The notes under the pieces were generated by a model, which saw nothing but the letters and a program-made list of their open reading frames with translations, was not told the DNA's origin and did no database searches. Source: Orbicella franksi (Eukaryota). Taken from it: DNA of 64,000 nucleotides. The DNA is taken from positions 62,001-126,000 of the forward strand of contig OZ116712.1 in the NCBI GenBank assembly GCA_964199315.1, read 5' to 3'. Shown here in pieces: positions 48,546 to 64,000 of the stretch. Position numbers and translations under genes: made by a program. The number at the start of each line of letters is the position of its first letter. Within the stretch, counting starts at the first letter, position 1.

Positions 48546-51524
48546 TACTTCTTTAACCCTTCTTTAACCGAGTACAGAAGTGGGCCGGGGCCCCGGAACG
48601 AGTATTGACGCTCGTTGCATGAATCGTTATCATTGTTTGTGGACGTATCATTATGAAGGCAAGACATTATGTGAGTCCACATTCCAATCGGGGTATTTCT
48701 TAACGTCTCTTATAACGTACTATGTAAGAATATATGCATCACTAAGGATGGAGGAATTGAACTATTTAAATCTAAGTTAACTAGTCAAAACAAGTTCTAA
48801 CTTACCAGTTATCACCCGATTTATTCCACAGTCACTTCTCGTTTTAATAAGCTCCCTGGTATCAAAGAAAAGAACTCCATGACCCAAATTGAATGAGCAA
48901 AATAATCAGTTTTCTAATTAACTAATAATGATAAATTTACTGCCATAGCGAGTTTGTGAAATTGACATTTGAACCTTAGCACCTCTGATAAAGTACTAAA
49001 ATGCTCCTACAAAGTGCTCAAAAAAGTTTCACAAGCGCGCTAAGTTAGTTAATTTACTATTATCAACTTCAAGTTATTTGGAGGCGGGACTCAAAATGTC
49101 AACGTTTTAGTCTAGCTGACCTTCAATAACCTAACATTTCACGAATCATATTAGATTCGTGAATAGATCATCTCATTTCGTCTACCGAACGAAATTTGTG
49201 TTCTTAGTATATGAACTTTGATAAAAACGGGAGTAGATTACAAAATAACTCATCATTTACCGAGAAATACTTTGCTAAGAGTTGTAGGAATGGTCAGCTA
49301 GCCCACCTCTAGGGGTGTGTGGGAGTCTGCTGACTGGGAAAATTTACACTGAGTGACCACATTCACTTTCTGGGGATTTTCTGTGCATTGCGAGAGAACC
49401 AACGTCCAACATTTCTTGATTGACATTTTTTGATTCTCTGCTAAATCGATTCGTTTTTCCTTCACAGCATACACCATTGAAAGTTTGTCTGTTAACTGGT
49501 TTCCTTGAAGATTCACGAGTTTTCACTTGGTTGATGAGCTTTGCGTCATTAACCCAGGGCCTCAGCTATCAGTTTTGAGATTTAACCCCTTCAGTACATT
49601 AAAAATTGCGGTTCATTTCACTCTGTCAACTTGAACTTCAGCGTATTTTGGTTATTTACCTTACGGTGTTATAATAAGACTATGGCGTAAATAACCAAAA
49701 TTGGCTCAAATCTTATAGTCTTTTTTGGTTAATTTAATATCCACACATTGATTGATTTCAAGTTTGTCTCAGTACTAATATCCACACAAACTCTTATATT
49801 TCAGCTCCTAAAGATTCTCCATGCAAAATCTTACATTAAATTCTAAACCTCGGATAATACATTTCCAGCTTTCTGATTTAGATTTCTGAACGGAGAAATT
49901 GCTGAAAACAGCACCTTTGGCTTCACAGTTGACTCAACTACTCAGAGTTTGACAGAAATGATTAATTGAAAGAGTTCTTAAATGCAGTACAACCAAGGCG
50001 AAGGGAGGATCCAAATTAGTGAAAACAAATTAATCTTTAGGCATAAAATTAAGCTAAGCATTCCTGTAAAGTTTGGGTAAAGTTTGTTACCTTACATATG
50101 GGTCTTGTAGTTTTTATACTTCAGTAAACTTGACCGATTCTGAACCACCTGTGTGAACAACACAATGTCAATTCTTGATTATGACGGTCGCGTAAACAAG
50201 TAAGATCTTACTTTGTTTGACTTGAAAAGGCGTATAATTTTCAGCGACGCCTCTTCATCGGATTTTCCCGTTAACTTTTTGTCGTTTGCCAAAATGTCCG
50301 GAATGTAGACACCTTTGGAGGTGATTATGCGAAGAATACTTCGGAAGGAAATTGTCTCGCTCGCTTTCCTCCATGACAAGCTGCAATCATCAACTCAAAA
50401 ACTGAACAACGCGCGACAAACTTTCCCGCCTTTCCATACTATCTCGTCGTTTAGATCTCACTGAAATGTCCACATTATTCAGTCGATTGAGGCAGCTAAT
50501 CCATTCGCCCTTGTTGGATACGCGATTACAGTTGTAAATTAAAGTCAAGTGAAGTGATAAAAATGTCGTTTTGGGTACCGAAATAGGTCAGCTATGATTT
50601 TAGGAAAGGCAATACCTAACGATAAGGTTTTCGGGAAATAGACAAAAAAAGCCCTAATAAATTCGAGAAGACTCAAGTTCCCCTAAAATGACCGAACGGA
50701 TAAAATTTTTATAGCAAAGGGTCCTTAAAATAAACATATAGAGCTATAACTGAAGCACTCCAGATAGCCTAAACTGAACAGCGTTTGAAAGCATTTGAGA
50801 AAAACCCGTCGCTGGGTGCCCTGACTCAAGCCTTACTTCATTTCATAAACTTGCGGTGATGGTTTAGACCGGACGTCCAATGATTCAGATGAAGCCTACT
50901 GCATCAGTTGAGCTTCAACGAAAAGTTGCTTTGTCATTCATGCCTTCATGCAGTGTTTGGGAAAAATTTAAGCCGAAATGTGCAGAAAATTCTATAAAAA
51001 TCCTCTAAAGCTCTCTCCATTGCAATAAAAAAGCATGTCTTGTAATTTGGGTTGCTTTCTTTCTACTCTTGTTTGTATTAAGTTTAAGTAGTTTGCGAAA
51101 AGGTCGGTCACGAATGCACTTTTGTGGGTCAAGTGATATAACTGGTTCGTTGAGAAGCGAATCCCCTTTGTATCGCTGAATATTTGTATTGTGCGAAGAC
51201 AAGAGAAGATCAAGATAAGCCAGAGAGTAAATCCCAACTGATAGAGGCCTTATACCCAAGGTAATCCCTCTTAACCTAAAATGCATAAGATCGTTTATCG
51301 GCCCAAATGTTGCTCGTTAGAAACTTAGATAGGTCAATTGGACAGAATTATGGAGAAAAAAAGAAAGTTTCGGGAAAAAAAAGTGCTTTTCCTTAAGTTA
51401 TTTTTAGACATGGTAACCAGTTCTTGGAGGGTGTTAGTCGCGTGATGCGTGGACAGCCCAAGCGACGTTCTCGCAACTACAACAATGTACCTCAGACGAT
51501 TTATGTGTTTTGACTTCGGAAAGA

Positions 51525-51857
51525 TGTTTCAACGGCAACGTGCTAAACAAAAGGCTTAATGAGCAGAACAATGGCTTTGCACGTGCGTTATAATTTTTGG
51601 TACATTTCTTTGCCGTCCTCTGCAAAACAAGAACGTGAAATGACCGAGTTCTGCATTGTCTGGAGAACGTGAACTACGATGGCTAATTTTTTAAATTTTT
51701 ATTTAGAATTTATCGGTGTCCTAGATTCAGTTTCGTGATAGCTTTGACAGTGATAAACAAAGTAAATTAGGGTGTCGCGAAATTCGTAGATAAAATATAA
51801 AATCATTTTTTTATCGACGTTGTCCTCGGCGTCGCCGTCGTGGTTTCTTAAGCTCCT
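51525..51857. mobile_element. Partial non-autonomous DNA transposon (right end of an abundant coral-type MITE family)
   Basis: Ends in GTCGCCGTCGTGGTTTCTTAAGCTCCT followed by TAA. Interior has TTTGCACGTGC and TACATTTCTTTGCCGTC, recalled as typical of the AGGGAGCTTAAG-terminated family. The left TIR was not found. Confidence 0.55.
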
Positions 51858-52036
51858 TAATAACCTCTCAACAACGACTGAGGAATGGTGTCTACAAAAC
51901 CCATGATATTGTAAAAGGTCACGAAACTTGATCCCACCGCGCGACGTTAGTTTCTGTTTTATTGTGTTAGAAATTTATATGCTACAATAAGCATTTTTTT
52001 TTAAATATCCAACCCCTGAAAAAAAAAAAAAAAAGA

Positions 52037-52137
52037 CGGGTGTCATATTACACCCCTACCTCCTCATAAGGGCCACCTCTCGACCACTCTCGACCTCCTC
52101 ATAAGGGCCACCTCTCATTGTGGAGAGGTTTGACTGG
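52037..52137. repeat. MITE fragment with a 24-bp direct repeat
   Basis: ACCTCCTCATAAGGGCCACCTCTC occurs exactly at 52058-52081 and 52093-52116. The segment ends GAGGTTTGACTG, resembling a CAGTC-type Tc1/mariner TIR. Confidence 0.55.
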
Positions 52138-52845
52138 GCTGTATTTTGTTCTGGATTTGATCGCTAGCGTTACATATTTAGTTTGAGCTGGATTTTATAC
52201 CACTCGGCGTACTGAATCTTCTCTTGACGAAGAGTAACAGCCACTACATCGCCACTGCTATGATTTTACGCTCAGTAAATTTGTGTAAATAAAGAAGTGA
52301 AGAGTTCTGAACACAAACCATTTCAACCTCACGTTGCGTTGTCCGTAGAGTGGGTAGGTTAATTATTGACACGATCTTTACTTAGGGATCATGTTTGTAA
52401 CTATATCACTACCAGATATTCGTAAGCTTTGGTGTACGATTGATTGTCGAACGATTTCGCTTTTCTCTTTTTCTTCACCTTATATCGTTCTTTTACCTGT
52501 ATCGTTAAAATGACAGCGAAGACCAGGTCCACTAGCAGTACTCAGCGCCATTTGAGCACAGACTTGACAGACTTCGAGTGGGAGTGTCTTCTGTCTAGTG
52601 CATCGTTTGCTTTTCCCGGCCACATTGCCTCCAGCTCCAGTCTTCGACAGAGTTATCGAACTCAACGAACTGAAGAAACCATCAGCGAACAAAAACCATC
52701 AGCGAACTAAACCAAGATCTCGCCGCCATCCTCCGCCCGCGGCACGCACAAACCATTTCTTCAAACTCGCGCGCGTTGCTCGTAGGAGTGAAAGTGAGGC
52801 TGTTTAGAGCCCAGGACAACCGTTTTTGATCTTTCGACATCCAAG

Positions 52846-52898
52846 ATGGCGGAAGACATGCGAGCGAAAGTGGCACAACTTTTGAAAGGAATAGACAG
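52846..52898 (+). CDS. eIF3K: eIF3K exon 1 ([17 protein letters not shown])
   Basis: CCAAG-ATG-GCG start context; donor AG|GTAAGA; phase 2. Confidence 0.95.
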
Positions 52899-55800
52899 GT
52901 AAGAAAAAGTGGAACGGTATCCATTAATTTGTAGAAAAACGAATAAGTGTACATTTTATAGATTAGTGTAACAATCTTCTGTTTAGGGACCCATCTTAGG
53001 AGCCCAATGATTCTCTCGATCCGCGTGGATCAAACCAGGACGTAACATGTCGATCAAAGTCGATCATCGAAAACGTAGTCGATAAGTCGATAGTACTCGA
53101 TATTTGTCGATAATTGTCAATCGACAAGTTAAATTTGTCGATAAAAGTTGATAATCACAAGATTTTCAACTGATTATCGATTTTATCGACAAAAATGCAG
53201 ACAAATGTTTCAATCAGCTACGAAATTCAAGTGACCAAAGCAATAATAGCTCCAATGACTTTTTTTATGCCGAGTGTAAACAGCTTGAAAGTGAATCTGT
53301 ATGGCAATAAACCTAAATAAAAACCTGAACAACCAAGTGGTCTGTTATTCATTACAGAATTGAATGTTTAAATTACCTTGAGAAATGATCGATTAACAGT
53401 TTCAGCTGAACTAAATCGCGATCTATAACATAACTCGAACCAACCTAATTCCCAGGGTCTCTCTAGGCGGAGGAGATGAGAGATCCTGGGAACTCGAAGT
53501 CGTGGTTCTTCGGGGGAACAGAACGGGCCAAAGTTTAGACTAGATGTGGGATAAAATCGAGGCAAGCAAAGTAATTAAGAAGTAAAGTAAAGTAAATTGA
53601 TATTTTATTTCATCGGTGTTTTTACTCAGTTCAACATGTGACAAATACAAGCTGCTACGACTCTCCTCCCTCTCCGCTAGGTTGGCTAAATTTTCCCAGT
53701 TTGTATGCCTCTTGCTTCTCCTTGTGCCTGTGACTGTTGTACCAGTCCACAACCTACATATGCCTATGCCATACATCGTTTTTTGTATTTCGGATACTTG
53801 TTGATTGAAATCGAACAAAATCGATCAAAATTGATCAAAATCAATCATAATCGAACAAAGTCGATAATCACAATAAATTGTGTGATTGACTTTTATCGAT
53901 TTCCGATATTTGTCAATTGATTAGTATCGACAACGATCAACAATGATTGATTTTTATCGACTATCGAAATAATCGACATGTTACGTCCTGATCAAACCCT
54001 TTTAGTTATATGAGGGAAAAATGTACGTGACCATTTATGGTTGTCGATAAGCTTTACAACGACGACAGTCACTCATGTGTTAACTGTTACAGATGCCCTT
54101 CCCGATTCCCCTCGATCGTCCATTTGTCGACAAGTTTATTTTTATGCTTGTGAGCTTAAAATGGCTCCTTCAATTTCAAGACAGCGCAGCCTTAACCTCT
54201 TACAGTTAAGTGATTGCCTTCTAACAACTGTGATCATTCATCATGTTACAACTGAAAATTAATAAGCTTAAATATAATAACAATAACATAAAAAAGCGTA
54301 TCACAACTGGAAGTAAAGGCTACATCTTAAAGCTAAAGAACAGTTACTTTAGGGTTACCTGAGTGTCTGTATTAACTAGGCTCTCAGCATCGACATGAGA
54401 GTTATTAATAGTCACTTGTTATATCTATTCAAAGACTAAAGCAAGAAAGAGAACAATTTTCAATGTCCTAACTGTAATTTAGATTCAAACTGAATGAAAC
54501 ATATGCCTATTGAAATAGTCAGCTGTTTTGCACCAGGGTCTACAGGGGTCAAACACCAGACTGAAAGATACAGTCATCAAACATGTCACACTGTAAGGCT
54601 ATTTTGTAACCTTTTTTTAGGAACAAAATACATTAACCTGTAGAAAGCTTTCATTTAAGAGTTCAGTAAGCGGATTTTATTCAGTGAACAGATAATCAGT
54701 ATCAGTTAAACTGAGTTTATGCAAGAGTGTGTCACTCAGGGTCACAGAAAAGTGTCGGTTGTCTATATGATATGGTGTCCGTATTTAGGGGGCTAATGTA
54801 AGAGAACATGTATGAGCTTTCCATTGGGATAAACAAAGCTCCCTGAAATAAGATTGTGTCTGTATTTTAAGTGTGTGTTGTCCATAGAGTGGGATTACAC
54901 TCTAGTTATAAATTTCAATCTTAAATTAACAATGGCAATTTTGTCACATTTTTAGGTACAACCCTGAAAATCTTACAACTCTTGAAAGCTATGTTCATCT
55001 GCAGGTATGAATATCTAAAGACCTAGGTAAACTAACTTGTAGTTAACTGAAGTTGAATGTCGCTAATGCCAGTAGTTCTGAGTCAAAACGTAGCATAAAG
55101 GTCAACAAAATATCCCCTTGTGTGGAGTCTTTATAAGGTACATTGTGTTTCACATTATTTCACGTATTGTCTTTGTTAGGTTTATAATAATGCATATGAT
55201 GTGGATGCAAATTTAGCAGTATTAAAATTGTGAGTAACATATGATTTCTGTGGTTGTTTCTAGAGTTATAAATTGAAATGTTTTGAAAGCTGAGAGAATA
55301 AGCTGTGGAAACATGAACCACAGACCAACATTGTTTGATTTAAGTTGTGTTGAAACCTCACAGAGTTAGGCTATAGTGAAACCTTGAGACATGAAATGTA
55401 ATTCTATCTTTTCTGTGGGCACAAAATCCTGAAGTGTGGCCATTTCTGAAATGAAAGTTATGGAGCATTATTTTTGTGTTGTGTTGGTTTTTAAAAGTTT
55501 TGGATATATTTTATAAACTAAGCACATATTAAGCACTTTTTCGGGTAGTTTGCAAATGCAGTAATTTGGTGAATGTAACAGCTGGAAATTTGCCTGTGTT
55601 CACAGACAAACTTTGCAAATAACAGGTTAACAAATTGATTTTTTTTTTGATGTTAGGTATCAATTTAACCCTGCCTATCACCAAACTACAGTCACCATGC
55701 AGATCCTGCTGAAAGCTCTCATGACATTACCAAATGCCGACTTCATCATGTGCAGATGTTTAATTGATGATGCCAACGTATCCTTTGTTGTCAGAGCAAC

Positions 55801-58562
55801 ATTAGGGTCCATTAAATTTAGAATTCGGTAAAAGTATGATCACTTAATGAATGAATAAGCAAGTAATATTCATGATTGTATTTTACTAATATTAATGCTT
55901 ATTTCATAATAATTTATCTAGTACTGTAACTGAAAAGCCCTTGTTGGGTATGATTTAAGCTAACAAAATAATAGCAGTGTTCACTGTTTTGATTGACTTT
56001 GAATTTAAGCTGACTCTAATCCCATTGGGCATTAAGAAAACTAGGTTCTGGTGACCAGTGTGTATCTGAGTTTTTAATAACCACTTCCTGGAATGCAAAT
56101 CACTGTTAATATCCTTGACATTGAATTTCAGCAACAAGATCCAGCTATAGCACGTGTCATTAGACTCGCAGAGCTACTGGAAACATGTAATTTTTTGGAG
56201 GCCTGGGTAGGAGTTTTATACAAACAATAATCATGTACAGGGCACTAATGAGTAAAGTAATTCAATCTTTCTTTCAAGGGGAGGTCAAACTGTTGTTGCA
56301 AGTAAGAATTAGGTCTTTTTTTCAGAAATACTTAGAGGAAGAGAGTTCACTTGTGGATGGCATTGTAGGATTTCATGATGCAATAAGAAAATGTGAGTAT
56401 TGTGATGAAAGTACAGTGGATTCCTGATTTTCGAACCTCCAAGGGAAACAAGAACTGGTTCGAAAAATCAGATAGTTCATGAAATCAGGGGTAAAATTAC
56501 AGTGTTTGACTGAGGAGAGGGAGACTTTTGGTTTGAGTTATCAGGAGGTTCAAAAAATCGAAAGTTTGAGAAATCGGGATTCCACTGTAGTGGTATGTTG
56601 TTGATTATAAGCATATTACAAACAAGTTATTCTGTTGTCTTCATAATGTCAAACAAATTAGGAAATGCTTATCAGGTAGCTCCCCTGAAACACTACATGT
56701 AGATGATGGTAACTGGATTAACAAGTGCAACAGCTCACTATTGGATTGCCACAAATGAAAACAAGAGGCTGATCAGTGTGGTAGCCAGATGTTCATTCCA
56801 ACTAAGCCAGGTTTAGTCAAATAACACCAATTCTTCTGGACTTCAGTGGCTACCAATTACGTATTTTGTTACTTTGAGATAAATGTTACAATTAAGATCA
56901 AATCATAACTTTTTCTGGATATCCCACCTGGAACAATGCCACGTAGAATGAGCATTACAATTTGTAGTATACTGGCTAACAGTTCCATGGAGAAAAGGAG
57001 CTTTCTAAATGGTTCCCAAAGAGTTAATTGTTTGCATTTGTTTAGATCAAGTAGGAACCTCTTTCTTACCTTTTGTAGTATTAATTTTTAGCTCACAACT
57101 TTTTTTTTTTTGATAGATGCCAGTTATGTCATAGGAATAACATATCAAACAATAGATAAAAACCTTATATCAGAACTTCTTGGAGGGTTGCAAGGTATGT
57201 TTCATCACTGTCAACAGATTAACATTTCACTGACAGAAGTGTTTGTGTTGAGACCAGTTTACATATTTTGTACAATTTTTGTTTGTCTATTTTGCCGTCA
57301 TTTCACTTTCAGGGTATGTTCTTAATTTTCCCCAGGACTATTGTCTATTGACAATGCAATGCCCCATTTTTCAGGTCTGTGTTTGGTGATCAGGCCTTTG
57401 AGTAGAAGCAAGGCTAGAGTTGACATTGTTATGATACAAAATTTGTAACTTTTCAAATGTAATTTATCCAGTTCTCATGCTAGCTATTGTAGTTTCTAAT
57501 CTCGTCAACCATGGCCTCACTTTCATGCAGAGGCTCAGTTACACATTTCACAGAACTGTAAACTGGCCATTGTTGAAGTGGTTTTCATTCACAGTGATGA
57601 GTAACGAGTGTTCTTGGACTGTTGATTAAACATGCAGGCCAGTTCATGGTTTAGTGTCGCCATCATAGTGNNNNNNNNNNNNNNNNNNNNNNNNNNNNNN
57701 NNNNNNNNNNNNNNNNNNNNNNNNNNNNNNNNNNNNNNNNNNNNNNNNNNNNNNNNNNNNNNNNNNNNNNNNNNNNNNNNNNNNNNNNNNNNNNNNNNNN
57801 NNNNNNNNNNNNNNNNNNNNNNNNNNNNNNNNNNNNNNNNNNNNNNNNTCAACTCGGGATGATGAGGCTGATTAGGCCTCTAGCAAGATTATGCTAATTT
57901 ACCGAGAAAAATAACTTTAAACGAAAGAAAATTGAAATTAAAAAATTACAAGAGATAAAATTACAAAATTACATCAGGCTGGATGGAGCTGAAAAAGCAT
58001 AGTTTATTTCAGAGCAATCTATGAAGTGGTTCTGTTACATGTGGTTTATGTTAACAATTTTCAGGTGAAGAACTTGATGACTGGATAAAAGCTCAAAACT
58101 GGACAATCAAGGACGACGGAAAAGTATATGTTTGCAACCAGGAAGCTCATATCAAGTCCAAGAATATTGCAGAGAAAATTGACTTTGAGAGTAAGTTCTA
58201 CTGACCAATTAAATGAACAAATTATGAATGACACTATTTTTCCTTGATCAACACATAAAGCAGAGGAAATAAGAAATTTTGAGGAAACTCGTCAATTTGG
58301 GGATATTGTTTTGATGTGCCGAGTTCTCATTTGCACATTTCAAGACACTATGCGCTCAACAAAACTGCAATCTTATGCATGAGGGGAGAGATGGGTGGGG
58401 TTTTACAGTCCTGTTGCCCAGTTATGTCCACTCACTCAACGGTTGCGACTACAAAAAAAGCCGCTTACCGCGTGTAAGTGTTCTGTAGAGTCTCGTCTCA
58501 CAAACCGAGTTTAATGTCGTTATTTTTCAGGTGTTGCTGGGATAATTGCCGCGGCCAAGTAG
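52846..58562 (+). CDS. eIF3K: Eukaryotic translation initiation factor 3 subunit K; whole-gene span, 9 coding exons, 651 nt, 216 aa
   Basis: Join 52846-52898, 54956-55004, 55180-55229, 55657-55777, 56132-56206, 56326-56392, 57117-57194, 58065-58190, 58531-58562. All eight introns are GT-AG and phase-compatible, giving one open frame: [125 protein letters not shown]. Confidence 0.97.
53036..53990. mobile_element. 955-bp non-autonomous DNA transposon (hAT- or P-like termini) in eIF3K intron 1
   Basis: Perfect 19-bp TIR CAGGACGTAACATGTCGAT / ATCGACATGTTACGTCCTG. Flanking duplication ATCAAAC at 53029-53035 and 53991-53997. About 11 and about 9 TCGA motifs in the two subterminal ~160-bp zones. 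No transposase ORF. Confidence 0.92.
53442..53493. mobile_element. Small hairpin MITE nested within the 955-bp element
   Basis: Imperfect inverted arms TTCCCAGGGTCTCTC / GAGAGATCCTGGGAA around a short purine-rich spacer. Confidence 0.6.
54956..55004 (+). CDS. eIF3K: eIF3K exon 2 ([17 protein letters not shown])
   Basis: Acceptor TTTTTAG|, donor CAG|GTATGA; 49 nt. Confidence 0.95.
55180..55229 (+). CDS. eIF3K: eIF3K exon 3 ([16 protein letters not shown])
   Basis: Acceptor TTTGTTAG|, donor |GTGAGT; 50 nt. Confidence 0.93.
55657..55777 (+). CDS. eIF3K: eIF3K exon 4 ([10 protein letters not shown]...CLIDDAN)
   Basis: Acceptor TGTTAG|, donor |GTATCCTTT (U12-type); 121 nt. Confidence 0.95.
55778..56131 (+). 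other. U12-type (minor spliceosome) GT-AG intron, eIF3K intron 4, 354 nt
   Basis: 5' splice site GTATCCTTT. Branch sequence TCCTTGAC at 56112-56119, with the branch A at 56118, 13 nt from the 3' end. No extended polypyrimidine tract. Confidence 0.93.
56132..56206 (+). CDS. eIF3K: eIF3K exon 5 ([25 protein letters not shown])
   Basis: Acceptor TTTCAG|, donor TGG|GTAGGA; 75 nt. Confidence 0.94.
56326..56392 (+). CDS. eIF3K: eIF3K exon 6 ([22 protein letters not shown])
   Basis: Acceptor TTTTTTTCAG|, donor |GTGAGT; 67 nt. Confidence 0.94.
56414..56587. mobile_element. Complete 174-bp Tc1/mariner-type MITE in eIF3K intron 6
   Basis: TA flanks at 56412-56413 and 56588-56589. Left TIR is CAGTGGATTCCTGATTT; the reverse complement of the right end is CAGTGGAATCCCGATTT. 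Confidence 0.88.
57117..57194 (+). CDS. eIF3K: eIF3K exon 7 ([26 protein letters not shown])
   Basis: Poly-T tract plus GATAG| acceptor, donor AAG|GTATGT; 78 nt. Confidence 0.94.
57671..57848. other. Assembly gap (178 N) within eIF3K intron 7
   Basis: Run of N. Exons 7 and 8 join in frame, so no coding exon need be hidden. Confidence 1.
58065..58190 (+). CDS. eIF3K: eIF3K exon 8 (G-EELDDWIK...IAEKIDFE)
   Basis: Acceptor TTTTCAG|, donor |GTAAGT; 126 nt. Confidence 0.95.
58531..58562 (+). CDS. eIF3K: eIF3K exon 9 ([10 protein letters not shown])
   Basis: Acceptor TTATTTTTCAG|; TAG stop at 58560-58562. Confidence 0.9.
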
Positions 58563-58636
58563 AAGTTTCGCGCTGATAACTTATTTCCACGTCTGATGTT
58601 ACTTCTGGTTTCTGTATTTACCGAGTCTGCTGAGAA

Positions 58637-58642
58637 AATAAA
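58637..58642 (+). terminator. Probable eIF3K polyadenylation signal
   Basis: First AATAAA, 75 nt after the stop codon. Confidence 0.6.
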
Positions 58643-59506
58643 ACCAGTTTACCAATGGTTGTAGCAGTATCAATTCTAACCGTAAAGTCTTCCACAAAAA
58701 CATTTGTGCTGCGATTCCCGTTGAAGGTGTTTTGCGTAAAACAATGTTACGTCATGAGAATGTTAGTAATCCGTCTGGGTTAGCAGCCTATCCGAAGCGG
58801 AAAAGAACTTTCTGATGGCCAACAACCTGACCAGTGTTGTATTTTTCTGACTGTAAGGGACGTTTTTGCCTTTTTACTAGTGCTTTCCTGTTGGTTAGAA
58901 GCGTTGGGAATACAAATCAATTTCTTTTAACTGGACTTATAAACGGGAAATCTTATACTCGGGTATTGAAAGCGAGCTTAGAAAACGGAATGTTATGAGC
59001 CGGTAACTGGGTAAGAAAGAAACTGAGGCTAATTAAAGGGTCACCCTAGGGATTCTTTCCACAGAATTCCCGCAAGGTTTCCCGCGAGCTAGAAAAAATT
59101 ATTAGGTGGACTAGCTTCGAAATGTGCTATGTCTCTTGGAAAATTCTTCTTCTGTAACAGGGGGTTGAAACGCTGTTGAGTTACTCTGATAAGCGCCGCT
59201 AAATTAAATATCCATTCCAGACATAACCCCTTTTTGCCCTGAAGGTGGAATTTCTGACCTTTTGCTTGTCGTCTCGCCGATCACTGCTAGGAAAATGTTC
59301 AAATATGCCTAGTTCATTTTCAGGGCCGTTGCACTGCTCATTTAACGTTTTCTCTGCTACGTTCTCGTTGTCGATGCCGTAGGAAGTTCCCCGTCTGACT
59401 GATCCTATAACTGAAGAGAAGGGGCTAGGAAGTCAAATATAATCTGCACAGCCGCCATTAAACCACTAGGCCTTGTTTATTTATTGATAACGTCAAAGAA
59501 TACAAG

Positions 59507-59726
59507 AATCAGATAGTGTTCCGTCCGCCAGTCAACACCCTTTGTACGGGGTGCTACCTTCTACTCGGAGTACCTTGTTTCCCCACAGTTGCTTGACTTG
59601 AATGTACTGTTTCTAAATAAAGGTCGTATTTTACGGGGTGGGGTCGTCAACCACACGTCCAACCCTCCTCCTTTATCCGGGCTTGGGACCGGCTAGATGT
59701 TCCTAAGGAACGTCTAGGCGGAGTTA
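59507..59726 (-). mobile_element. Candidate ~220-bp twister-headed non-autonomous retroelement (RTE 5' UTR-like)
   Basis: Starts at the ribozyme cleavage site and continues GGTTGGACGTGTGGTTGACGACCCCACCCCGTAAAA, recalled as RTE 5' UTR-like. Bounded by AATACAAG at 59499-59506 and 59727-59734. No ORF. Confidence 0.55.
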
Positions 59727-59731
59727 AATAC
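59658..59731 (-). ncRNA. Twister self-cleaving ribozyme (P1-type core with a P3 insertion; P1 poorly paired)
   Basis: The minus strand reads UAA-CUCC-GCC-[UAGACGUUCC-UUA-GGAACAUCUA]-GCCGGUCCCAAGCCCGGAUAAA-GGAG-GAGGG. P2 (CUCC/GGAG) is perfect and P3 pairs 9 of 10 bp. The 22-nt core is identical to the rice Osa-1-4 twister as recalled from the literature. Predicted cleavage is U|A between 59726 and 59725. Confidence 0.93.
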
Positions 59732-60419
59732 AAGTAGGATAAGTTTATCAGTATAGCGCAAGAATATGTTCAGTGAAGAAGTAAAGCGTTCCCTTATATG
59801 TTCTTTAAATAAACGCAAAATTGTTCCTAACCGAGGTAAGGACGTAAGATGTCGTGTAACCTGAAAAAGAACTCAAAAAATGTTTTGAAGGCAACGGGCA
59901 CAAAACCTAGTGACCTCTGAGAATATGGACGGAAATAAAATCTTGTAAAATATAGATAAAAGGATGGCATTGAAGACTTATGTCACATAATAGTTGATAC
60001 AAACTGGGTGGCACCAAGCTAGTAGGTAAGAAAGAAAATTCAAGAAGAGAATGCATACTTGACACGCAAGGCAGTACGAGTATGGCTTTGATTTTCGATT
60101 GAAACAATTGTCAACGTTTCCGATCATTAAGCGAAAAAAAAATGAATTTAAGGCGCAACCTTTCCTGGGGACCGGCGATTGGCAAATACAAACCCTGGGT
60201 AGAAAATGAAAAACGTTGACAGAAAAGCAGCGATAAAAGAAAGCACGAAAAAGGCACACATGTGACGACATAATCTTGTCATTACATTCAAAAGAACGGG
60301 AGAAAAAGAGTTTAAAATATCCGGAACAATCCAAGGAAAGGGGAAGTACATCGAAATAACAACTTTACGACAGTCGCAGGGTTTCCTAAGTATATGCTTT
60401 CATTATGGAGGAATATCAA

Positions 60420-60693
60420 AACCGTGACTGCTTTTTTATTAAAACGTCGAAGTTTCTACCAAATCTACGACTTTACAGATCCAGAACCTCCGGATACCAT
60501 TTTGTTTATGGACTGGAATGTTTGGTTACGTTTACGTTTCCCAGAGGCTAACTGATCTCTTTTGAGACCTCGGCCTTATTATTAGGTGTAGGTTTTTGAT
60601 TGAATTGTATTTTACTTTTAGAGGGCCACAAGTTTGTATGTAATTTTAATTACTGTTGAGTGTTACCCTCATAAAATAAAGTTTCTTACTTAC
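60420..60693 (+). mobile_element. Possible 3' end of a non-LTR retroelement
   Basis: AATAAA at 60675-60680 followed by a short (CTTA)n-type tail. No recognisable RT motif, so the 5' boundary is arbitrary. Confidence 0.3.
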
Positions 60694-60702
60694 ATTCATG
60701 GC

Positions 60703-60753
60703 CTCGATTTCCCAGAGCCCTCGCATCACAAAAAGTAAGGTTCTGGGCTCGAG
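60703..60753. mobile_element. Small hairpin MITE (CCCAGAG/TTCTGGG family)
   Basis: Arms CTCGATTTCCCAGAGCCCT and AAGGTTCTGGGCTCGAG. Similar architecture to the element at 53442-53493. Confidence 0.5.
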
Positions 60754-61021
60754 ACTGCTCTCCTTTCCTTCATCATGCCATAAGATTGAACACGATCACA
60801 CGTGACGGAGGAATTTTGAAGTCTGGTTTTGAAATCTTTCTTAGATGGCGTTATTTTTCGTCGCGTTAGAAATTTGTTGGTGTCGCGGAATCAATTCCCT
60901 AGACCGTGACAAAAAATGGTAATAAAAAACATTCACAAGGGTCAAAGTAGGCTGAATTATGTTCAGCACGATTACGTAGCACGGCAGGCCTTGTCCATGC
61001 CGCGCGGTATTAGCACGACTT

Positions 61022-61248
61022 GGCCTCAAACGGCGTGCTCTTGCCGTGCCCAACTGAATTCACAGCTTACTGCATCGGCTGCCGCTGCTTTCTACCATTT
61101 CAAATGGCCTTCAGCAAAGCAAACTTCTTCCGATCTTCCGCGACTGGACGAAATTCGACGTTTGAAACTACTGCCGCTCTTTTGTCATGTCACTGCTGGG
61201 CCAAATTCATTTGAGTTTGGCACGGCATTAGCACGACGTTTGGCCTTA
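61022..61248. mobile_element. MITE with ~40-bp imperfect TIRs
   Basis: Left end is GGCCTCAAACGGCGTGCTCTTGCCGTGCCCAACTGAATT. The reverse complement of the right end is TAAGGCCAAACGTCGTGCTAATGCCGTGCCAAACTCAAATG. An extra partial end copy lies at about 60965-61020. Confidence 0.75.
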
Positions 61249-64000
61249 CAACCTTCGATCTATACTTACCCAATCATTCCCGACTGTCTATATAACGAGT
61301 TTAATTGGCAAGCAAAAAAAAAAGGGCGTGGTTAAAACAAATCAGCGCTTAAGAATATTGTCATCTTCAAACTGTACTCCACAAATAAAGTTTAAGATAT
61401 AATGCAAGAGGATCCTTAACTTTTTGTTTCGCATTGAAACAACTCACAGGGTTGCTCTAATTGGTGAATAGAGCTCCCGACTATTCGAAGCTCGCGTTTG
61501 GATGCGATTCTCTCTTAGAAATGGATTAATTAAGTTTAATCAAGTTTCTCCGGGGTCACTTGGTTAAGGAAAGATAATGCTGTCATCACAACATTAGGGT
61601 TTAGAGTTTTCTCATTAGAATAGAGACCGGGTATCTGTCCAACAAGAGCGCCACGCGAACGTGAGACACGCGCGACCAGGGCTTAAGACCAGAGCACGAA
61701 CAGTGTTATCTATCGTTTTTAACCAGGCTTGAGCAAGATTTTGATGACGTGTCTGTCAATTTATTTTCCGAGATTGGGGCCAGCTAGAAAAGATCAGCAA
61801 GGACAAAGGCAGACAGAGAATTCAAATCTCCTGTGAGATTCAAGAAATGTCAAACCACCTTTTGTCTTACGATTCTTTTAGCAGATGGTCTCCAGACTAA
61901 GAGAACCAAAGGCTCTGGAACTAGAGCTGTGACCATCATTGTTCCCGGAGCCCATGTGTGTGTTAGCCGACGGAGCCTAAGCATGTAAGAAAGAAAGGCT
62001 CGCCTGGATGGGTTTGGTTGTTAATGTGGGTGTGGTTATTTGCACATAACTTCCTTTAGATGGTTTGGCTTTGTTTATAACACTGTGGGATTTCTCGGCA
62101 ACGATTTCTGTAAATGGTCAGTGTAGTTCTCTTTGCAACATAGGAAATGTGCATGATAAACCACGTTCCTTGATCCTCCTTTGGCGCTTCCACCTTGCTT
62201 TGCCGCCTCGCCTTTTTGGTAATTTAGTTAGATATTTCCCAGTCGTCTCTCTTTGAAGTAATATGAGCGTGTCGCTTCCGTGTTGGTTCTGTTCGCGCGA
62301 GTGTGACAACAGTACAAGAGAGGGTTGTATTGCTGCCGTATTGAAAGACAGATCAGACACAGGTTTTAGCTCGTGAATGCGCACGAGTTGCGCACGAGTT
62401 TATTCCTTTCAAAATAAAGTCGGAGTTTTGTAGTTTTGCTTTTCACAAAACCTGAGCATTGCGCCCAAGCGCTTGGCTGTGAGACAGCCCGTGTTCCCCT
62501 CCGAATAAGACCAATAATACAAGTTCAATTTTATATTTATATACAAGCCGAGGAGATAACGACTGTGCGGCTTAGAAAGCTGCGAGGCAATAGGCACGGC
62601 GGTTTCTCAGAGGAGTGATAACCCACCAAACGTCTAGCTCGGATTTATTGATTTAATGGACACGAAATACACAGCGAGTCTACGAGATGGACATTTCAAT
62701 ATTCAGGATGATAAGTTTCCGAACCGTGCCACGAAATCTTCCAGTTGCAATGACAATTTCGATCAAACGGTTTCTGAAGTACAGTTTCACGTCTCCTTAC
62801 CAGCTGGCAAACTCTTTCAGTAGGGAAATGATTTAACGGAGAGAGAGAGAGGCGGCATAAAATTGGCGTACTTCAATGCTCCCCATTTCTGTCAAAACGT
62901 GTGAATTTCCTTTTATACCATGCGTTCTGTGATTTTCACGAAAGATTCAACATTGAACATAATAACAAATGACATCAGATTTCGAGTGTTGCTTGACTAT
63001 TTTGGTATCTCCACTTTCCGACCGGTTTGATCACGGTATATATCGTCATACAATAGCTTCTTTTCGTCATTTTCCCATTTCAACATTTGGGTAAAAATTC
63101 TCGTTTGGCGAGGAAAATGTTTCCTTTCTCTTGGGACCGCTTCCCTTTCTATGGACAGGACAAAATGCGGCGTTTGTCACGCTCTCACCTCGCGTGTTTT
63201 ATTTCTGATGTATCCCTCGTTATGTTCACATAAGCCATCAGTTTAGTCAGCTCATGACAAGTCATAAGAACTACAGGAAATGAAAGAAAATTTACAAGGA
63301 CTCATGAACAATGAGATGCATTTTTAGCATCTTTTTAAAATTTCTCTTATTTTATTCTTGTTGAATTATTTGCCTGCAAAATGTTATTGGTGTCATTTTC
63401 GGAAACAATTTTCTTTGGTGGGGAGGGTTGTAAGTTTATAATGCCAACTTATAAACAACTTAGTAACCTTTATTATTACATCTGTATTCCCGGCATTGCT
63501 TGTTATTTAGGAAGTGATTTTCTTTGTGAGGGAGTGCTTTAAACGGAGCACTGACCACGATGAGTTGAGCTTTTATTGGCTCTTTGTTTTTTCGGAGGGG
63601 GCGGGAGGCATTTTCTATAATGAGCTTTATCTTCAGAGCTTTACCCAAGGAAACCCGCCATGTTCCTGGTTTTATTCTTCGCCAATCAGGTGAAGTTAAC
63701 TTGGCATCTGCATCTTTTCTTGCGTGCGGCACCCATTCGCTCAGTTCAAGTCGTGAATACTGGTGATTTAACATTGGTCCATTTCGCTTTTTGTTTTCTG
63801 GGTTACTTTGGGTTAAGCTTGACAGCAATAAACCGTCGCTACAAATAATTGTACAACAACAAAACAAAACAAAAACACGCATGAGAGAAAAACTTCAAAA
63901 TTGCCGGGAAACGGTAACTGCCTTGGACGATATTGAGCCACCTGTACACACAACTTGTTTGGCAGAAAAGGCACTTCGTTCTTCAATTCAACGACCTCCA

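Follow-up and report, generated by a model that had tools for sequence, protein, structure and literature searches.

A twister ribozyme motif lies on the minus strand of a 64,000-nucleotide (nt) stretch of the genome of the reef coral Orbicella franksi (contig OZ116712.1, positions 62,001 to 126,000; hereafter referred to as the window). The motif opens a ~97-nt module, which ends in a stem-loop and a GUAAAA element and is followed by unique non-coding sequence, and the reads of the neighbouring plus-strand gene end about 1 kb away. The original prediction for this locus interpreted positions 59726 to 59507 as a ~220-base pair (bp) non-autonomous, twister-headed short interspersed nuclear element (SINE) with an 8-bp target-site duplication (TSD), mobilised by RTE machinery. 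Here we report a computational analysis of the locus and its paralogues, which indicates that positions 59725 to 59629 are probably the solitary 5′ module of the coral's own twister-headed, RTE-like (Perere-3-type) long interspersed nuclear element (LINE), made from a self-cleaved RNA.

A permissive Rfam scan of positions 59300 to 59950 returned a single match, the twister-P1 family (RF03160), which covers minus-strand positions 59730 to 59659 and model positions 1–68 with a score of 64.6 bits (E = 2.4e-14, or 4.4e-12 when scored against the whole genome). On the minus strand, the motif runs in order through UAA (59726–59724), CUCC-GCC, the P3 helix, CCG-GUCCCAAGC-CGG, AUAAA and GGAG (59671–59668), and is completed by GAGGG (59667–59663) and UUGG (59662–59659), with the scissile bond between U59726 and A59725. 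The core nucleotides UAA, GCC, GGUCCCAAGCCCGG, UAAA and GAGGG are all matched, as is every strongly conserved position of RF03160. The P2 (CUCC/GGAG) and P4 (CCG/CGG) helices are intact and also supply the partners of the T1 and T2 pseudoknots. The P3 helix spans 11 positions, consisting of 10 pairs and one C·A mismatch around a UUAG loop, and shows covariation among the paralogues. In P1, UAUU (59730–59727) faces UUGG (59662–59659) and can form at most one G–U pair. The ordered blocks, intact P2 and poorly pairing P1 described in the original prediction are thus all found, and the expected agreement with Rfam holds for the full length of the model, but not at the level of the gathering score, which is 67.2 bits. 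The window twister lies below this score because P1 is unpaired, and a gathering scan of the whole 64-kb window consequently reported no match. It is the second-best of the 37 RF03160 matches in the genome, all of which are under the gathering score, including two twisters that head LINEs (52.7 and 51.0 bits).

Judged by its sequence, the motif is a genuine type-P1 twister ribozyme. High-throughput assays have been reported to show that natural twisters tolerate P1 imperfections without reduced cleavage and that P1 is dispensable (PMC11662667). Moreover, in a study of Schistosoma mansoni (Liu et al. 2021, PMC8501958), twister T-variants with a mismatched P1 and two adenines at the cleavage site were found to cleave in vitro as well as in cells. 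By analogy with these published cases, the window ribozyme is probably still cleavage-competent.

A BLAST search with positions 59400 to 59850 against the assembly (497 Mb in 805 contigs) identified 23 other places, all confined to query positions 123–225, corresponding to window positions 59728 to 59626; the recurring part comprises the ribozyme and ~30 nt after it, and nothing more. No second copy of 59628–59400 was found in the assembly by this search, and the proposed 220-bp unit is therefore not a family, contrary to the original prediction. A search with a 31-nt core pattern, allowing up to three mismatches, located 30 sites of this twister lineage genome-wide (the reversed control pattern gave none), and none of these 30 twisters shares the 3′ part of the proposed unit. 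We aligned the window copy with those at C14:810429 and C14:2918947, the LINE heads, the C177 copies and the copies designated F56. The nearest relatives of the window module are C14:810429 (82% identical) and C14:2918947 (73%). The upstream flanks are unrelated in every aligned lineage, the similarity opens at U/AAC, and it closes ~97 nt further on, after a conserved (G/A)UAAAA. Past the A-run, pairwise similarity between lineages does not rise above shuffled controls (z ≤ 1.2), save for that of the two LINE copies with each other.

The shared module (59725–59629, minus strand), as delimited by the BLAST extent and the alignments, thus begins with the twister body left after cleavage, continues with a two-tier stem-loop (59660–59635) that immediately follows GAGGG-UU, and closes with GUAAAA (59634–59629), the last conserved element, which is similar to the GUAA repeat unit in the tail at the LINE 3′ end. 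The stem-loop, which incorporates the GG of the nominal 3′ strand of P1, is predicted in the fold of each lineage, and its consensus helix shows compensatory changes at four pairs. Five independent orphan lineages (the window copy, the two C14 copies, C177 and F56) lose homology right after GUAAAA. Furthermore, the snail Pomacea canaliculata (CM009759.1, L064:8961–9070) has the same head, with the twister, the stem-loop and GUGAAAAA, at 44.3 bits and with a decayed core, and the module is thus conserved across phyla. The Pomacea head is located 2 kb from a related truncated LINE, and no LINE open reading frame (ORF) occurs within 3.9 kb after it.

Two of the 30 copies head LINEs on the same strand, at C8:5458830 (L050/L055) and C10:10358808 (L051/L056). 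These elements are 91.8% identical over 3.15 kb, and their homology starts at L055:536 and L056:514, at A+1, the base after the cleavage site. Their ORF pieces match Exo_endo_phos (PF03372) and RVT_1 (PF00078), the apurinic/apyrimidinic endonuclease (APE) and reverse transcriptase (RT) domains, and their 3′ ends consist of a small hairpin followed by ...GTAAGTAAGT. The elements are flanked by TSDs of 12–13 bp, CTATCCGCGCGT and AAG(A/C)TTTACAAGC, whose 5′ copies reach twister position −1 and abut the scissile bond (p < 0.0003, anchored test). The family has few copies, the last 288 nt of the element having 17 matches in the genome, and its RT has relatives in other corals and molluscs; an Oculina copy (L063), which has no twister within 6 kb upstream, is probably 5′-truncated. 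We also observed that the LINE 3′ end (L055:3640–3687 and L056:3626–3673), a GUGUUU..AAACAC hairpin followed by GAAGUAAGUAAGU, resembles the stem-loop and GUAAAA behind the 5′ twister. With paralogue homology running from UAA, unrelated sequence upstream and both LINEs starting at A+1, the paralogues bear out the proposal in the original prediction that the 5′ end was set by self-cleavage and that the upstream P1 strand was replaced by target DNA.

In addition, in six copies an inverted twister head of ~85 nt is fused to mid-LINE sequence, which then continues to the normal LINE 3′ end. They lie at C15:19247998 and C15:19041662 (L052/L053), C15:18443129, C15:19092018, C15:19229985 and C579:5430, of which C15:19229985 and C579:5430 are known from the pattern-search listing. 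The inverted heads look like twin-priming-like 5′ inversions that would have reached the 5′ end of the cleaved RNA and were then multiplied by segmental duplication. Their occurrence on C15 and C579 shows that short 5′-terminal pieces of the LINE RNA get copied.

Other twisters in the genome occur in different settings. The commonest, at 56.1 bits (L033–L047, on at least 16 small unplaced contigs, and C3:6621, C10:2108093 and C177:50616), is embedded in a repeat of more than 3 kb, with flanks that are identical on either side, and no LINE ORF follows it; it spread through duplication of the larger unit and not as an element of its own. A further three twisters (L027, L029 and L030; C15:5223125–5239991), of a type other than the LINE heads, have a fully paired P1 (CUUU/AAAG), score 59.7–63.6 bits and lie at intervals of 6–10 kb in a duplicated gene-like region.

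In the window, the module is followed by unique non-coding sequence (59628–59507) without an ATG, excess structure, genome paralogue or LINE similarity, and no minus-strand ORF was found downstream of the module, in agreement with the original statement that the proposed unit has no ORF. With the ORF pieces of the paralogues as tblastn queries, no LINE protein signal was detected in window positions 50000 to 64000 or in the 10 kb downstream of C14:810429; downstream of C14:2918947, the sole signal was a weak RT fragment, unrelated and at a distance of 3.4 kb. Smith–Waterman comparisons of 59628–59440 with the whole LINE were at noise level and no better than shuffled sequence, and those of the post-A-run flanks of all lineages with each other were likewise at noise level. 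No GTAAGT-type tail occurs within 7.7 kb downstream of the window module, and the window copy shows no similarity to the LINE 3′ end. Thus, the window copy and L055/L056 alike start at A+1 with unrelated target DNA upstream, whereas an APE+RT ORF and a hairpin, (GTAA)n tail and TSD reaching −1 are present in L055/L056 and absent from the window copy. The window copy is thus not an internally deleted LINE with joined 5′ and 3′ ends. In the minus-strand direction, a run of N, either masked sequence or a gap, follows the twister at a distance of 1.8 kb, at window positions ~57670–57850.

The proposed TSD, the 8-mer CTTGTATT, is present exactly in both places on the minus strand, 59734–59727 on the 5′ side and 59506–59499 on the 3′ side, the latter without a GTAA-type tail before it. 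The match ends at −2, leaving a single base before the cleavage site, and the two copies differ at position −1 (T on the 5′ side, C on the 3′ side). The bona fide TSDs of the family, by comparison, reach −1. At a fixed distance, 1.1% of random pairs attain the anchored score of the 8-mer, which is 7. Among random anchors in the window, 2.3% had an exact 8-mer ending 0–2 nt before them that occurred again within 300 nt; the proportion rose to 7.5% for a span of 1 kb and to 24% for 4 kb. The 16-nt flank that contains the 8-mer also supplies two other 9-mers with downstream recurrences, at 57056 and 53651. Given these recurrence rates, the repeat, although real, is near what chance would produce; its exactness stands as originally described, but its standing as a TSD does not. 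An imperfect repeat of the 5′ flank, TAC(GAC)CTTTATTT, directly follows GUAAAA (59628–59614, minus strand) and is a candidate TSD of a ~100-nt mini-copy; its partner is the 11-mer TACTTGTATTT at 59736–59726, whose last base is position −1. As evidence of a TSD, the test at the A-run boundary is not convincing.

Contigs from DNA runs of two other congeneric species (C and D) span positions 58400 to 60600 without indels, with breaks only inside the repeated twister core. Neither species has an empty site of the kind that the original prediction proposed to look for; the filled site common to both indicates that the insertion is older than these species. No substitutions occur in either species at 59448–59795 (348 nt). 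We rejected this stretch as a sign of selection, because a 474-nt substitution-free stretch is also present in the right flank.

The stretch containing the module is transcribed at a low level. In the unstranded polyA RNA sequencing run X23, ~3 reads cover positions ~59470 to 59731 (limits estimated from binned depths), with none beyond. RNA contigs of 13 runs, from at least eight studies and three species and including polyA libraries, contain 76–100% of the sampled words of 59465–59735, and in several of these runs most of the surrounding 1.2 kb is present as well. Two overlapping AATAAA hexamers (59485–59480 and 59481–59476, minus strand) lie a few bases before the ~59470 read limit, and a TATA-like CTATACTGATAAAC is present at 59756–59742 on the minus strand, 12–25 nt upstream of the 59731 limit. 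On pattern matching, the TATA-like sequence could be the start-site context of a small transcript, and a discrete ~260-nt polyadenylated minus-strand RNA is possible on the very few reads available; as a putative 262-nt RNA, the stretch folds no better than shuffled sequences (z = −0.66). The neighbouring plus-strand gene, putatively eIF3K in the original prediction, has a spliced terminal exon from 58532 to ~58690, with 31 polyA reads splicing at 58531/58532. The original prediction also suggested that the ribozyme might cut antisense transcripts of this gene. The reads of the gene end about 1 kb from the twister, and X23 has none between 58696 and 59435; the suggested role finds no support.

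Together, these results suggest that the window module is probably a 5′ module of the coral LINE that stands without the rest of the element. In the mechanism that we propose, a LINE of the twister-headed lineage would be transcribed, the twister would cut the transcript between N−1 and A+1, and the cleaved RNA would be reverse-transcribed into a new site, with a copy of its 5′ end being inserted at the window locus. Because the RNA would have cleaved itself before reverse transcription, the inserted DNA would begin at AAC, and the P1 5′ strand would be supplied by upstream target DNA, here UAUU, which is unpaired. The sequence from 59628 downwards, including the second CTTGTATT, would be ordinary unique host DNA. 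Such an origin by retrotransposition of self-cleaved RNA is inferred from sequence comparison. The window copy is old, being common to at least two other congeneric species without indels, and it founds no family. As to how a copy of the head could arise, we tentatively favour, at less than even confidence, a 3′-truncated mini-copy primed on the internal stem-loop and GUAA through their likeness to the true 3′ end, as suggested by the resemblance of the hairpin and GUAA of the head to the hairpin and (GUAA)n of the LINE.

Several points weigh against this interpretation. The covariance model score of the window twister is 2.6 bits short of the gathering score (64.6 versus 67.2). One RNA fragment runs through the scissile bond up to 59731, which is 6 nt beyond it on the upstream side, and that molecule was therefore uncleaved. 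LINE copies are normally 5′-truncated, and a copy of the 5′ end only would therefore need a special, inferred route. The assignment of the LINE lineage as RTE-like is based on its architecture (3.15 kb, one ORF, APE+RT) and its ribozyme, and not on a tree. Finally, the best TSD candidate for the 97-nt module has two mismatches and a 3-nt indel (score 6, p ~0.03), and the other four orphan lineages show no repeat at the A-run boundary in the anchored test (p = 0.19–0.98).

Alternatively, a LINE from an extinct subfamily may have inserted at full length or as a longer copy and its body later been deleted or decayed, in which case the sequence from 59628 downwards would be unrecognisable LINE 5′ untranslated region or ORF. 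We consider this less likely, although it is a serious competitor. The CUCC-type orphans (the window copy and the two C14 copies) differ from the surviving LINE subfamily, whose P2 is CUCU/AGAG, as would fit an older, lost subfamily, and about 30% of the S. mansoni T-variants have no RT within 10 kb (PMC8501958). However, the shared 3′ limit just after GUAAAA in five lineages and the snail copy disfavours random deletion, no LINE protein signal remains in the 14 kb of window searched or in the 10 kb past C14:810429, and a module identity of 82% gives way to no detectable similarity immediately beyond. The original prediction had itself allowed for a LINE 5′ remnant with a chance 8-mer, and that alternative is closer to the data than the SINE it proposed. 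The SINE now appears very improbable. In its favour, an exact 8-mer occurs at both proposed ends, with an anchored score rarely reached by random pairs, and the stretch is transcribed; but the 3′ two-thirds of the unit are single-copy in 497 Mb, there are no copies that share both ends in different flanks and no 3′ end in common with the partner LINE, and the unit lacks a hairpin, a (GTAA)n tail and any similarity to the LINE 3′ end. Moreover, the distance between the repeats was chosen after the fact, and if it is left free, the chance of such a repeat is 2–8%; the repeat also ends at −2 and not at −1, the site is filled in both other species, and the partner LINE is itself low-copy.

The transcription of the locus could instead reflect an exapted host unit, a ~260-nt polyadenylated minus-strand RNA that would start just upstream of the twister, end behind AATAAA and have its 5′ end trimmed or uncapped by the ribozyme. 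The confinement of the X23 polyA+ reads to ~59470–59731, the two AATAAA hexamers, the RNA contigs from the 13 runs in three species and the lack of substitutions at 59448–59795 in the two other species are consistent with such a unit. Yet the reads number only ~3 and come from an unstranded library, the coverage by several RNA runs extends to most of the surrounding 1.2 kb, the substitution-free right flank deprives the conservation of any special status, and the putative RNA has neither an ORF nor a fold better than shuffled sequences. We thus regard an exapted unit as improbable. A more speculative extension of the solitary-module interpretation, to which we assign a low probability, is that the ~100-nt LINE head is a minimal retrotransposable unit that gives rise to RT-primed, ribozyme-only mini-copies, the window copy perhaps being also a small polyadenylated RNA gene with a ribozyme-trimmed 5′ end. 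Priming of the RT on the head would explain the same end base in the five coral orphan lineages and the one snail copy.

The analysis extends the partnership between twisters and RTE LINEs, which has been experimentally shown only in a flatworm, to a reef coral, with base-exact support from the paralogues, whose homology runs from A+1 and whose TSDs reach position −1. At the window locus itself, nothing unusual is established. The results nonetheless urge caution in the annotation of lone twisters in animal genomes, which can be the heads of such LINEs and not new families, and the shared 3′ boundary of the orphans bears on how a LINE RT chooses its priming site.

A comparison with known systems places the window twister close to RF03160, with which it aligns at 68 of 68 model positions and shares the conserved L1, L2 and L4 nucleotides and the P2, P3 and P4 helices, whereas its P1 does not pair and its score is 2.6 bits sub-gathering. 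HDV-like ribozymes head R2, RTE and other LINEs and need no upstream strand. As in those elements, a self-cleaving RNA at the 5′ end would free the element RNA from the upstream transcript and set its 5′ end, although the ribozyme class differs and the twister nominally has a P1 helix. Retrozymes are hammerhead-bearing non-autonomous retroelements with repeated ribozymes, in an LTR-like (long terminal repeat) or tandem arrangement, which form multi-copy families and circles. The window resembles them in carrying a small self-cleaving ribozyme in a short, non-coding, transcribed stretch, but differs in having one twister by pattern search, one copy and no repeat of the unit; with a single ribozyme and no repeat, the locus is, contrary to the original suggestion, not retrozyme-like. 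The closest counterpart is the RTE-clade element Perere-3 of S. mansoni. Its T-variant twister sits at the element 5′ end, the TSDs adjoin the cleavage site and supply the P1 5′ strand, and the 3′ limit of the element is given by GTAA repeats (Liu et al. 2021, PMC8501958). The coral case differs from Perere-3 as there described in its host, in the low copy number of the family and in the absence of a LINE body, tail and clean TSD from the window copy, and the coral stem-loop and GUAAAA, which occupy part of the P1 3′ strand, are not mentioned in the consulted sections of that study. By contrast, the S. mansoni cores, given as CUCC GC ... CCG GUCCCAAGC CCGG (A/G)UAAA GGAG GAGGG UUGG (PMC8501958, Table 1), are nearly identical to that of the window twister, and the single APE+RT ORF and 3′ GTAA repeats of Perere-3 are matched in the coral paralogues L055 and L056.

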